DNA of 34,909 nucleotides from Bigelowiella natans CCMP2755 (GCA_000320545.1 ADNK01000882.1:1-34909), one strand, 5' to 3'; counted from the stretch's first letter, positions 29,061 to 34,827 are shown. Notes: generated by a model not told the origin, from the sequence alone. Numbers and translations are program-made.

Positions 29061-30230
29061 TCAAGTTTCTTGAAGTTTGTTAATAGCCGACTGCAGCATG
29101 CGCGCGTGTCCTTTTTTTATTACTGGATAGTCCTCTCGTAATGCCTTGGGGCATCGGTACATTAGAAGAGTTTCTCCATCGACCTCTTCTTTTTTTAAGA
29201 CATCAGCATACTGCTTCCACCAAGGCGCAGTATTAAGGGTCGACACAAAATGAAACACATCGTTGACGGTCCAGTCCTTGATTGGCTTCAGAATTGTAAG
29301 TTCTTCTGTACCGGTAGAACCCGTGGAATCCGTGGAAGACGCTACGGATAGGTCATCTTGAATCACAAGTTCCCGTTTCACGATCTCTACATTCTGTTCC
29401 ATCTTCTCACTTGATGGAACCGTCTTCCTGCTTGATAGAAGCATGGGCCCGGGAGAATCAAGGTCCTCTTCGTGCATTTTCTTTGGATATGCAGAATCCA
29501 TATTGATGTTTGTCTTCCCTCCAAGGCGCCAAGCACGAATGTTGTTGAGGAGCCCATCGGCTTCGATGCTTTTTTCTCGCTTAAAAAGGCCTCGTTCGAT
29601 CAACCCCTTTCCTTCAGATGTTTCTGACCATAGAGCTCCTCTCTTTTGTACAGGTGGGCAAATTGCCCAAGTGGATTGTTGAGACACAGAAACTTTTTGG
29701 TCGCGATCGAAAGTAGTGGAAGCATTCCTCAGTGCGGCTAGGGTCCCATCAGTGGGTGCATCCTTGCGAATTCCTTTCGAGTTTTTGCCTTGCTCTGCGA
29801 GACGTTTGTTTACCTTTGCTTCAAGTTGTTGATAATTTGAGGTCCCAATAGCGAGTTTCTCATATTCTTCAATTGGAATGTGCAAATGTTGAAAGTAACA
29901 AGCTCTTTCAGTGTAAAAACACTGGCCGAGTCTGTGATTCCGACAAATTCCAGACTTTGCCGGATTCACCCAGCCATGGACAAAAAGACAACGGGAACCT
30001 TTCAAACAGTTCCTTCCCGTTGCCCAATGATGGCACGTTTTACCGTGTTTTATTTCAGTGTCCTTATCTAATTCATTCTTTCCATTCCCTCGCTTCCTCC
30101 TCCTGTTGCTATGCAATGGCGGTTGTGGTTGTACTTGATAATGGGGAGGAGGGCAAGGAGGGCAAAATTGTGGTTGAACCATCATCTGTCTCCTCTGGTT
30201 AAGGAAATGGTTAGGTTGAAGTGAATGCAT
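29061..30230 (-). CDS. Tandem CCCH zinc-finger protein with C-terminal SAM domain (single long exon; additional 5' exons possible)
   Basis: C-x8-C-x5-C-x3-H (KTCHHWATGRNCLKGSRCLFVH) and C-x7-C-x6-C-x3-H (ICRNHRLGQCFYTERACYFQH). The C-terminus WTVNDVFHFV..YADVLKKEEVDGETLL..IKKGHARMLQSAINKL fits the SAM consensus. Q/P-rich N-terminus with RRRKR. First ATG is at 30230; the frame is open further upstream. Confidence 0.88.
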   Translation of the reverse strand: MHSLQPNHFLNQRRQMMVQPQFCPPCPPPHYQVQPQPPLHSNRRRKRGNGKNELDKDTEIKHGKTCHHWATGRNCLKGSRCLFVHGWVNPAKSGICRNHRLGQCFYTERACYFQHLHIPIEEYEKLAIGTSNYQQLEAKVNKRLAEQGKNSKGIRKDAPTDGTLAALRNASTTFDRDQKVSVSQQSTWAICPPVQKRGALWSETSEGKGLIERGLFKREKSIEADGLLNNIRAWRLGGKTNINMDSAYPKKMHEEDLDSPGPMLLSSRKTVPSSEKMEQNVEIVKRELVIQDDLSVASSTDSTGSTGTEELTILKPIKDWTVNDVFHFVSTLNTAPWWKQYADVLKKEEVDGETLLMYRCPKALREDYPVIKKGHARMLQSAINKLQET

Positions 30231-30739
30231 TGTCTTTTGGATGTTGTAGTTTGGTGAGCCCCTCTCTTCTCTTCTCTTCTCTGAAATGACGTTTGGCTTT
30301 TGTGCTGGTTGGTGCAATCCTTTCCTGGTCTTTCTCCCGCACAAAAAATAGGCCCTATCTACATATGAAGTCAGGCCTTCTTTGTTGTCGTCTTTGAAAT
30401 TATTAGATATGCAACACCGTTATTCACATGAGGGAAAATTCCTTTTGCAGGTCTGAAGTAGTAAGTGCTAAAGAGAGTTACTATCGTGTTTTTGTACCTA
30501 AATCGGTCATTTTGATGAAAATAAAGAGAACATGAAGTAACTTTTTTCGAACAAAAACAAATTGTACGGCAAGACATAGTTCTTCAACATTCCTGTCTCA
30601 TAAAATGCAAAGGAGGCAGGTTCTTTTCATTACTACTATTTTTTTTAATAGAAGTAAAGGCTAATTTGTAAAGTAAGTTCAATATAAATATCAATATATA
30701 TATCTTATAAAATCATCTTTATCGTGAGTTTCCACTGGC

Positions 30740-30945: not shown

Positions 30946-31383
30946 GACCATAGAACTACCTGTACCTGTATGTGACGAACGACAACTCCAGATCCAAACG
31001 GCTAGCTGGTGTATGTAGTGCAGCGACATGCGTAAGACTTAATGGGTACATCTTCCATCTTCCAGAACGGTATAGATCTACATGTACCTGTAGCTTGTAG
31101 TGTATGCTTTTTCCTAGGAGTATTCAGCGACGATGCATCCGCGCAATTTTATTTTCAATGAATAATTTGCCCCAAAATATCGCAACATTTGCGTCAGCAT
31201 GTGTAACCGCATCATCGTTTGCCCTTCATCAGCTGGAACATTCTGTCCATGGTCGCATTATTCCACTTATTGGTTATTACTGATCTAAATCTACCCGCAG
31301 AAAATTCTTCTTTTCAATTTTTCGCTGCCGAGATTCCTACGAGTAGTATACTCATTTATCTTTTGTGCCCTTTCTGACAAGAA

Positions 31384-33108
31384 ATGCAGACACGCACACG
31401 TACACGCACACGCAAAGGCACAGGCTTACCCACAAGTTCACGCACACGCAAACACATGAGGACGAGAACGAGAACAGCAACTACTCATCATGCTGACCTG
31501 TCCACTACCGACACCAAAATGAAGAAAGTTCCCTTCCCAGACGGTTCGAAAGTGAATGGATTGAACGGCACAGATGTTTGGTTGCTAAAGTATCTCAAAA
31601 TTGAAGACCGAAAGAATCTTAACGTTTGCCCCGACATCACAGTGTCTCTTGGTACAGCCCCTGATGGAGTCAAATGGTGTATGAGAGTGGAACGAAGCAC
31701 AGATGTGCGCAGTGCCGTGCTTCGCTGCACAGGTTTCAAGACCGAAGAAGAGGGCTCGTCGAAGTGCGGCCAGGAATTCGGGATACATCTCAAAGGACTA
31801 GAGAATTCTATCAAAAAACATGCTTCTTGTGAAAGAATTGTGGAATTGAGCCGTAACAATTCAGTGTATGTTAGCAAGAAGTGTGCGCAGGATCTTCTAG
31901 GTGAGAGACTGCAATAGCTACTTGTGCACAATTTGGTTTTCACTTTTGCTTACACTATTTTAGGAGAATCAGTCCTCAGTACGATTTTGAAATTTTCACC
32001 GCGTGCCTTCACGGCACATGCTGGCACCATCAATTCACCTTCCTACAATGCAAGGAGTTGTAGTTATCGTCCTACTACTCCTAATTATCGTCCTACTACC
32101 CCTACCTATTCTCCTTCGAGTCCTGCATATGCTCCTTCGAGTCCTGCATATGCTCCTTCGAGTCCTGCATATGCTCCTTCGAGTCCTTCTTATCCTGCTA
32201 CTAGTTCACATGCAGAGAAACAGGCAAATAAATGGAAGAAAGAGAATGATCTTTTTGTTCATGTCGGGATTCCACTCCGCTCGGATAGCGACAGAATTTT
32301 CGCTTTCCGAAAGTCCAGGAACTCGGAATCCAGAGTCGGTGATGTATCTGAATTTCAGTGGGAAGACATCAGCGAGATCGGAGGACAGTCTTTTGTTCAT
32401 CAACAGATTAAATATGGGAACAAACCTCAAACTCGCATGTACACCTTTGTGGATGTACGACTCCTGCTAATGGCTTTTGCAAGACTGTGTGACACTGTGC
32501 ACAAGAAGTATCACTCGCGCAAACACCCCGTCATCCATGGCGATCTCGTTCCTGTAAATCTTCTCCTTCTACGTGGCAAGGGATTGGTGCCTATCGACCC
32601 CATGTTGACCCCGTTCGGAACAGTTGCACCGGGAGGCACTCTAGAGTGGTCGGCTCCGGAGCAGATCTTGGAACATCCTGTCTCCGCAAAAAGCGATGTG
32701 TACTCAATTGCATCCATGGTCACTTCTTTGCTAAGAGGCAGGATTCATGGCGAGGTGACTGAGATCGTCAAGGCATTGAAGCGAAAGCGTGAGACGAATT
32801 TTTCGCTCAACATAGTGAAGCTCATCAAGAAGCCAGAGTTGCTTCTGGACCATCCTTACAAGATTCACGGTGTGTTGAAAAATGCTCTGAGCTTCGACCA
32901 GGCGTTGCGGCCTACCTTGAAAGAGTTGAAACAGGCCATCATTGAACAAGCGCACTCGAAAATCTGGACAGAGATTGGTGACCCACAAGGAGGGCCCACT
33001 TGCTGGCTCGAGCTCTCGAATTTGAATTTTGGAAAACTGTGCTACTCAGGTGGGAAAATGTCACCTGACGACCCATCGGAGCTTGTGTGGGTTGCATCAG
33101 ACTCCTAG
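31384..33108 (+). CDS. Atypical Ser/Thr kinase-like protein carrying RNA polymerase II CTD-like heptad repeats (2 exons)
   Basis: Intron 31901-31963 (G|GTGAGA..ttttag) joins ORF 31384 to ORF 31924 in frame. C-lobe motifs: [16 protein letters not shown] (in the DFG position), [19 protein letters not shown]. No GxGxxG or VAIK motif recognisable. The start may be 31457 or 31519. Confidence 0.85.
32044..32211 (+). repeat. Eight 21-bp coding units encoding Tyr-led heptads
   Basis: [56 protein letters not shown]. The DNA unit ctccttcgagtcctgcatatg is repeated three times exactly. Confidence 0.95.
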
Positions 33109-33941
33109 CTGGCCACAGAGCGTGCACATGGATTGAAAAGCGATTCTGTGTTCCAAATTTTCCAGCAAGCAAGTGCATGCGTTCCAGATGGTGATGGCAA
33201 TGCTAGAATGGTCATGACGGCGTTGTGGCAGTGCACGTTCTCATGCACGTCTTGGACAATGGCAACCGTCGAAAGAGGCCATCCGTCCATGTGTTCAGAC
33301 ACTCGATCTTAGTCAATACATGAATGGAGGAAGATTCTGAGACGTGCTTGTTTCTCATGCGCGCGCGTTTGTCATAGGTTGCATCGCATCACACCTTTCT
33401 AGTTTTGCTTGACATTTTCTCACAACGCACGGCAACTAGTAGTAGAAGCTGAGCTAATTCAACATCACAAAACGCGATGCATGAATGTTATGATTTCAAA
33501 GGCAAACTTTGCATGTGCATTATTTTCTGTGCTACTGATCGATCGGGCGATCGAACTATGTGCCTGCTACCACATCTTGCATCGACCGGCACTGCCCTAT
33601 CTAGCTATGCGCGTTCGCTCCATGCATGCGAAAAACAAAAAAAGGGCAGCGTGTACGGCTATGTCTTACCATGGCACAAGCTTAAATTGGCCTCCCCTTA
33701 ATCATGTTGAGCGTGACAGCATCATAACATGCTTCAGAGATGGCCTGACTGGCAGTCAAAGCAGGGCCACAACGACGACTTTACGCTATGTTTGCTGATC
33801 GGGGCTGCTACGTTTCTTCACAGGTAGCAAGTATGTCTGATGGCCACACTTTATAGATTAGCTTTTGGGGAATAACAATGATGGAGCTCAACCAATCTAG
33901 CGTAGACGTTTGAGACTCTAGAACTTGACAGTATTTTGAAA

Positions 33942-34319: not shown

Positions 34320-34603
34320 CATAGCCCATGTTCAGAAGGGAAATGTGAGAAATTGAATGCTTATCATTGTGCGTAGTTGCTGCTCTTGAATTGTGGCAGA
34401 ATACGACAAATTGGCGTCACAGTCTTGGCATCAGTAAGGTGCGGTGCTAACCTCGAAGGCCTGCAGCTTCACAACGTACACTGTGCGCGAGAACGCGTAT
34501 CCCCATCTGCTCGGTGGTGACAATAAATCTCGTTATATCACGGGTCAGTGTCACCACCATGAGCACAACAATTACAACAACAAACCCATACCTACATATC
34601 TTC

Positions 34604-34634
<31 letters not shown>

Positions 34635-34827
34635 CCATCATCATTAGGATCATCGTAGTCTTTGTCATGTTCTGTCCATCGTGAGGACGATGATGCACAA
34701 GAGTGAACATTCCCTTCTGAACTCTGCGCTGCTCTAGCCCCGCTCCCCCCACACCCCTTGTTTCTAGCCATTTAAAGATGTCTCATCACCCTGGATTTAC
34801 GATCTGAAACTTGAGTGCAAGAGGGTC
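33942..34827 (-). CDS. 3' end of a PH-domain-containing protein (5' part outside the window)
   Basis: Exons 34790-34827, 34452-34506 and 33942-34229 join in phase to DPLALKFQIVNPGWGYAFSRTVYVVKLQAFEELADWTYALKNFVKS..., matching the PH beta6-beta7 plus C-terminal helix pattern (F-x-I..Y..EE-x3-W-x2-AL), followed by a disordered tail. Confidence 0.6.

Follow-up and report, generated by a model that had tools for sequence, protein, structure and literature searches.

The CTD code is generally seen as peculiar to RNA polymerase II, written on the tandem YSPTSPS heptads that form RPB1's C-terminal domain (CTD). Can such heptads be at work in a protein that is not a polymerase? The question is raised by a gene at positions 31,384 to 33,108 of a 34,909-nucleotide stretch of Bigelowiella natans CCMP2755 DNA (GCA_000320545.1, ADNK01000882.1:1-34909), the whole of which is called the window below. 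This gene encodes a kinase-like protein with an internal run of Tyr-led heptads, and an earlier note on the sequence had proposed that it is an atypical kinase with a built-in CTD mimic. We found that the heptads are present in the mature mRNA and that related eukaryotic proteins keep heptads at the same site, which points to selection on a CTD-type sequence. What the loop does is weighed in the last section.

The heptad array and its conservation in eukaryotic relatives

Translation in frame 1 bore out the two counts given in the earlier note, eight consecutive heptads of which six are core units. The array, on the + strand, is made up as follows.

32044..32211, + strand: eight in-register Tyr-led heptads, with a Tyr spacing of 7 throughout
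32065-32190, + strand: six core units with Y1, P3, S/T5 and P6
32107..32187, + strand: young 21-bp tandem repeat, two YAPSSPA units and near-identical flanking units

Two stretches with a 21-bp period were detected by Tandem Repeats Finder (TRF), one with 3.9 copies and 98% matches (32107-32187) and one with 2 copies and 95% (32064-32104). At the DNA level the two YAPSSPA units do not differ, and their neighbours on the two sides depart from them by 1 and 2 bases. The recent expansion that the earlier note had suggested is real: an old, conserved module has recently been expanded locally, which gave the identical 21-bp copies of this genome.

The transcript contig L011 (1989 nt, JGI transcript data set) aligns to 31360-31901 and 31958-33453. 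Since L011 has the 63-nt intron spliced out and the array retained, the heptads are present in the mature mRNA; an array spliced out or untranscribed, an outcome on which the mimic would have foundered, was not seen. Compared with the genome, L011 has three mismatches and one 42-nt gap, which amounts to two YAPSSPA units fewer. The copy number may really differ, or the exact repeat may have been collapsed in short-read assembly.

Relatives were then sought with the transcript-derived protein P0001, which was the query for all full-length analyses (relatives and structure), each exon being also searched separately. A word search retrieved four full-length proteins (P0002-P0005, 525-542 residues) and a 272-residue fragment (P0006), all with 34-38% identity. 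P0002-P0005 have the identical architecture, with a Tyr/Ser/Pro stretch ending ..SSPAYAP.. at the matching position. The contigs of these relatives encode eukaryotic genes (MRP-S33, eIF2alpha, PI3K), and the eIF2alpha of one of them is 73-84% identical to that of ochrophyte stramenopiles (Chrysophaeum, diatoms, Sphacelaria, Spumella), but only 54-64% identical to this genome's copy.

The closest relative, the Tara Oceans contig L028 (57% identity), carries the units YSPTSPA, YSPASPS, YAPTSPA and YAPASPS between conserved anchors. In the Pfam search its array passes the RPB1 repeat model PF05001 (23.1 against a cut-off of 20.3), and P0181, P0179 and P0041 score just under this cut-off. Exact consensus YSPTSPS units were found in a third subclade (L030/P0179, P0180, P0181 and P0041), with four perfect copies in P0181, three in P0041 and two to three in L030 and P0180. 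Within these YSPTSPS arrays the units differ at synonymous sites. Moreover, the heptad block of L030 and P0181 is identical at 28 of 32 positions (88%), compared to 59% over the whole proteins.

In a tree of 63 sequences, which is unrooted so that the direction of transfer between bacteria and eukaryotes cannot be read from it, the ten eukaryote-type rows form one clade (100 in the Shimodaira-Hasegawa-like approximate likelihood ratio test, SH-aLRT) composed of three subclades. Each subclade has Tyr/Ser/Pro heptads at one loop, between the anchors ..SPR.. and ..K.W... Y-x-P-x-S-P periodicity in orthologues had been named beforehand as a test that could refute the mimic, and it is kept at this position in the three subclades. 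A private slippage repeat was rejected because the orthologues carry heptads. The simplest history would be a single gain of heptads at the base of the eukaryote clade, and because the relatives keep heptads at the same site while their perfect units vary synonymously, the conservation points to selection on CTD-type sequence. One part of the earlier proposal did not survive this comparison. The array had been read as a 'Ser5-only' decoy, which is true only of the recently expanded units of this species; the relatives have Ser2, and the feature is a species-level detail and not a family property.

A further element was observed in P0180 (L064:285-2501, a Tara Oceans scaffold on which the gene adjoins VPS11), where an extra N-terminal WWE domain (E 3.5e-12) precedes the shared N-terminal domain, the heptad loop and the kinase-like domain. 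WWE domains are typical of nuclear and poly-ADP-ribose signalling, and this one is a weak hint of nuclear signalling.

The kinase-like domain and its bacterial-type family

The protein around the array has no RPB1 domains in the Pfam search and is, as the earlier note had it, an atypical kinase. The only Pfam match is to Pkinase (PF00069; 35 bits, cut-off 31.7), it covers profile positions 115-259, that is, the C-lobe, and exon 1 has no Pfam match. The landmarks of this part are listed below.

32209..33105, + strand: kinase-like domain after the loop (Pfam Pkinase, PDB sequence matches, family profile, VIA-align)
32362-32385, + strand: invariant Glu in EDISEIGG (family column conservation)
32536-32559, + strand: catalytic loop HGDLVPVN, with Lys replaced by Val
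32593-32604, + strand: IDPM in the place of DFG (Asp kept, Phe-Gly not)
32647-32664, + strand: WSAPEQ

Sequence searches of the PDB matched DLK and CTR1, and when the family profile was compared with solved structures, the best matches were PknA, PknB and PknI over the C-lobe (E 3.5e-16 for PknA and PknB). The elements HxD...N, the metal-binding Asp and APE are present. Residues H305, D307, N312 and E346 are invariant or nearly so, the metal-binding D325 is present in 57 of the 58 members of the family alignment, and the equivalents of the alphaF Asp and the alphaH-I Arg are conserved in the family. By contrast, GxGxxG is absent and no conserved Lys was found anywhere N-terminal of the catalytic loop among the 58 aligned members. 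The catalytic-loop Lys is Lys in 44 of the 58, and V, S or T in every eukaryote member. Lacking a Gly-rich loop and a conserved beta3 Lys, and in eukaryotes also the catalytic-loop Lys, the domain is of doubtful activity and probably catalytically impaired, either a pseudokinase or a very atypical enzyme.

The location of the loop was examined on an AlphaFold (AF2) model of the transcript-derived protein, built with the 58-member alignment. The model has a mean predicted local distance difference test score (pLDDT) of 81.6 and a predicted template-modelling score (pTM) of 0.82, with pLDDT >90 for residues 30-130. The sole long low-confidence stretch, residues 144-194 (pLDDT <50), corresponds to the heptads, which are predicted to be disordered. 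In the model, the C-lobe also bears a long beta-hairpin, and a family-specific, beta-rich extension follows the kinase-like core at the C-terminus. VIA-align placed the model with PknG and PknB (Z 14-15) and with many other kinases (Z 13-15), and Foldseek gave loose kinase matches only (TM ~0.25). Given that nearly all the VIA-align alignments begin at model residue ~106, ahead of the loop, the loop apparently lies within the N-lobe: in the model, the pre-loop hairpin and the post-loop strands seem, provisionally, to form one N-lobe with the heptads inside. This corrects the layout described in the earlier note, an array between an unrecognised N-terminal region and a kinase C-lobe. What precedes the array is a domain conserved in a bacterial-type family, and the heptads apparently lie inside the kinase-like N-lobe and not between separate domains.

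The protein shares with PknA, PknB, PknI and PknG the kinase fold (by structure, Z 14-15, and by sequence for the C-lobe) and the core motifs HxD..N, metal-binding Asp and APE. It differs from them in that the Gly-rich loop and the conserved beta3 Lys are missing, a C-lobe hairpin and a C-terminal extension are added, an extra domain stands N-terminal to the kinase-like part, and the eukaryote clade has lost the catalytic-loop Lys.

The family itself was delineated by a HMMER scan with a profile of the post-loop part. Only eukaryote sequences scored better than E 1e-30; they were followed by >100 proteins of 430-520 residues built on one plan: behind an N-terminal domain carrying LGxAPDGLPxxLxVxR, which a zinc ribbon precedes in some, come a variable loop and a kinase-like domain marked by HGDLKPxN and WAAPEQIL. 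The B. natans protein has both family hallmarks, the APDG N-terminal motif and ..EWSAPEQIL.., spaced as in the family, and the eukaryote clade groups with this bacterial-type APDG family in the tree. Judged by gene context and genome titles, the bacterial-type members are mainly from Myxococcota metagenome-assembled genomes (MAGs), with some from Planctomycetota, Acidobacteriota and others. No model for the APDG N-terminal domain exists in Pfam or NCBIfam, and the neighbourhoods of 23 bacterial loci revealed no conserved partner gene.

Domain order, N-terminal motif, position of the variable loop and the APDG-HxD spacing (~240-260 residues) are common to the B. natans protein and the bacterial members, whereas the latter retain HGDLKPxN, frequently carry a zinc ribbon at the N-terminus and show no heptads in the loop. 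Indeed, Y.P.[ST]P occurs in the homologous loop of 0 of 53 bacterial-type members, where the loop spans 12-80 residues and is hypervariable in length and composition. The family is otherwise bacterial, and its history is probably bacterium-to-eukaryote. In the ESM Atlas, the P0001 query matched generic kinase clusters only, some of them consisting solely of giant-virus (Nucleocytoviricota) proteins; as a lead only, giant viruses are a possible vehicle for spread among protists.

Other heptad arrays in the genome and the gene model

The genome searched comprises 91 Mb in 3736 contigs. A six-frame search with the 49-residue array returned the array itself, RPB1 on two contigs, an array on contig C1358 and one weak match only. 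The notion that heptads are common in this genome was rejected, since only 3 or 4 loci match in 91 Mb. The organism's own RPB1 has ~27 consensus YSPTSPS heptads, on contigs C3231 and C255. Its CTD region lies at ~125.7-126.5 kb of C3231 and ~126.5-127.2 kb of C255, with a matching pattern and a 1115-residue open frame in both; the two contigs may be alleles or an assembly duplicate. The comparison with these heptads, which the earlier note had recommended, shows differing codon families in the two arrays. Ser5 is encoded by AGT in the four Ser units of the kinase array vs TCN in 27 of 27 RPB1 units, and Pro6 by CCT in 6 of 6 units vs CCA in 21 of 27. Because these codon families differ, recent copying from the RPB1 CTD was rejected as the origin of the array.

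The array on C1358 (105384-105617, L021) stands at the beginning of a 424-residue open frame and has ~11 Tyr-led heptads, YTPTSPS for the most part; its gene is probably of the VIT/DUF2135 type, non-polymerase. It resembles the kinase array in being a linker of Tyr-led heptads in a non-polymerase protein of the same organism. It differs in protein family and in its codons (TAC/TCT/CCT vs TAT/AGT/CCT), and it is for the kinase array that conservation in orthologues of other lineages is established here. CTD-like arrays also recur outside RPB1 in other protists, as four unrelated environmental eukaryote proteins (P0198, P0200, P0205 and P0207) carry PF05001 repeats together with VWA, DUF2135 or zf-TRAF domains.

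The nucleomorph RPB1 is without heptads (PMC4822330). A nucleomorph link, in which the protein would be a nucleus-encoded heptad donor, was nonetheless rejected: stramenopile relatives without nucleomorphs carry the array, and the protein has no signal-peptide-like N-terminus.

The gene, which is nuclear, is single-copy: searched in the genome, exon 1, the part after the loop and the complete exon 2 each matched nothing but themselves. Both exon open reading frames (ORFs) are in frame 1 of the + strand, separated by the intron. Its remaining features are the following.

31360..31518, + strand: 5' leader (L011 begins at or before 31360; TRF period 6)
31519..31900, + strand: exon 1 coding, from the ATG of MKKVPF (ORF and transcript concordant)
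31651-31668, + strand: family motif GTAPDG in the N-terminal domain, shared with ~50 bacterial-type relatives
~31837-31884, + strand: beta-hairpin in the N-terminal part
31901-31963, + strand: intron, 63 nt, GT..AG, phase 1, missing from transcript L011
31964..33108, + strand: exon 2 to the TAG stop, coding for the last part of the pre-loop helices, the loop of heptads and the kinase-like domain
33109..33453, + strand: 3' untranslated region, at least to 33453 (L011 end)

Two ORF calls disagree on the start codon. The MMETSP ORF (P0023) uses an in-frame upstream ATG at 31384, which would add a 45-residue Thr/Arg-rich N-terminal extension, whereas the JGI ORF (P0001) begins near MKK/MKR, as do all the orthologues, which are without this extension. 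An (ACACGC)n microsatellite detected by TRF at 31390-31450 lies in the transcribed leader, in frame with the kinase gene.

Elsewhere in the window, a 427-residue ORF on the - strand (29061-30344) is arranged head-to-head with the kinase gene, ~1 kb apart; Pfam gave it weak matches, all under the cut-offs, to a CCCH zinc finger and, at the C-terminus, a SAM domain. Read on the + strand, a trinucleotide repeat at 34444-34771 would encode a run of ~13 His; read on the - strand, it would give runs rich in Met or Asp.

What the heptad loop may do

The reading we favour, tentatively and at a little short of an even chance, is that the loop is a CTD-type docking or regulatory array, maintained by selection, in an atypical Hanks-type kinase-like protein of a bacterial-type family. 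In the eukaryote clade, a variable disordered loop has been turned into a short CTD-type heptad array (3 to 7 units), which selection appears to keep and which is tethered at both ends on the N-lobe. This array would be written, erased and read by the cell's own CTD machinery, that is, by proline-directed CTD kinases, Ssu72/Fcp1-type phosphatases, a prolyl isomerase and readers of the CTD-interacting domain (CID), WW or capping-enzyme type. Alternatively, the loop might co-partition with the Tyr-rich CTD. By either route, a catalytically weakened kinase-like scaffold would be recruited or switched together with the transcription apparatus.

Both routes have precedents. In yeast, the Nrd1-interacting motif (NIM) of Trf4 is a natural CTD-like motif that is bound by the Nrd1 CID and competes for this CTD reader (PMC4186968), and CTDs co-partition in droplets that are dissolved by CDK7 phosphorylation (bioRxiv 10.1101/316372). 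The Trf4 NIM is the closest precedent for the possible working of the loop, being likewise a disordered CTD-like motif in a non-polymerase protein, which could compete for or borrow a CTD reader. It differs in being a single 9-residue motif with acidic residues replacing phospho-Ser5, whereas the loop is a heptad array with phosphorylatable Ser/Thr-Pro. With the RPB1 CTD, the loop has in common tandem Tyr-led heptads with Pro3, Ser/Thr5 and Pro6, predicted disorder and, in the relatives, exact YSPTSPS. The differences are the number of units (3 to 8 vs ~27 in the organism's own RPB1), the setting (inside a kinase-like domain, as an internal loop, and without RPB1 core domains), Ser2, which is mostly Ala or Arg here, and codon families unlike those of the own RPB1.

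Several observations weigh against this reading. In this species, the core units mostly have Ala or Arg where the consensus has Ser2, Thr4 is replaced by Ser, and the protein has no match to PF05001 in the Pfam search. In the stramenopile subclade the heptads are degenerate and their periodicity is broken. With 3 to 7 units, the arrays fall short of the length of a functional CTD, and no clear signal for nuclear targeting could be established in the protein. Repeated gene conversion from RPB1 could keep the consensus without functional selection, and L065 shares the codon-family pattern of an RPB1 CTD. Finally, the CTD-like arrays of unrelated protist proteins may mean that such heptads are perhaps a generic linker solution in these lineages.

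The alternative that survives best, although we consider it unlikely, is a generic proline-directed phospho-regulatory loop, through which kinases of the mitogen-activated (MAPK) or cell-cycle cyclin-dependent (CDK) type, or autophosphorylation, would switch the N-lobe; the likeness to the CTD would then be a by-product of slippage and no CTD reader would be involved. Such a position on the N-lobe is a common place for kinase regulatory inserts, and the loop is disordered and anchored on the N-lobe, adjacent to the helix behind it. The units of this species without Ser2, the stramenopile subclade, which retains S-P and Y-x-P pieces and not strict heptads, and the comparable arrays in unrelated proteins also fit such a loop. 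However, a generic S/T-P loop needs neither a Tyr every seven residues nor exact YSPTSPS, and YSPTSPS is kept, with synonymous variation, among species that are only 50-59% identical overall.

Less probable still is that the loop is a pseudo-substrate or auto-substrate in cis. Here, the kinase-like domain would act on CTD-type heptads and its own loop would fill the active site or be phosphorylated by it, resulting in autoinhibition or priming. With 50-75 residues tethered at both ends to the N-lobe, the loop could reach the cleft; the catalytic Asp, the Asn, the metal-binding Asp, the APE Glu and the P+1 segment are invariant, and the Ala at heptad position 2 of this species recalls classical pseudo-substrates, in which Ser is changed to Ala. 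Yet the relatives have Ser, not Ala, at this position, nothing ties the bacterial family to CTD-like substrates, and the loss of the catalytic-loop Lys in eukaryotes, with no Gly-rich loop or conserved beta3 Lys, makes activity doubtful.

The least probable explanation, a functionless low-complexity spacer in which any sequence is tolerated and heptads arise from slippage and/or occasional gene conversion from RPB1, would account for the hypervariable homologous loop of bacterial relatives (12-80 residues), the fresh slippage in this genome (identical 21-bp units, possible copy-number difference) and the RPB1-like codon families of the L065 units, but it is at odds with heptads at the same site in all three eukaryote subclades, with a heptad block more conserved than the whole protein (88% vs 59%), with units that vary at synonymous sites and not in protein sequence, and with codons that exclude a recent copy from the own RPB1 (Ser5 AGT vs TCN; Pro6 CCT vs CCA).

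As for novelty, our literature searches retrieved no description of a kinase with CTD heptads, and 'CTD mimic' there mostly denotes synthetic peptides. The known kinds to which the loop relates are the natural CTD-like motif and the kinase regulatory insert; the kinase-like family around it has no name. A bolder version of the docking array, which we regard as rather doubtful, is that bacterial-derived pseudokinases or weak kinases of one eukaryote clade, from Rhizaria to stramenopiles, bear a conserved 'mini-CTD' in their N-lobe, which would be the first natural heptad-array CTD mimic. It might serve as a decoy or sensor titrating CTD kinases, phosphatases and readers, or the protein might be a CTD-directed kinase gated by its own pseudo-substrate.

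The analysis also delineates a kinase-like family of bacterial type, which is widespread, has no name and shares a conserved N-terminal domain. If the loop is only a phospho-linker, it is still a clear instance in which a specific repeat has taken over a hypervariable loop. With 3 to 7 heptads on a folded scaffold, the arrays would moreover be a compact, naturally occurring system in which to study CTD writers and readers off the polymerase. If the mimic is true, these cells reuse the CTD language outside the polymerase, at one fixed site across distant protist lineages.

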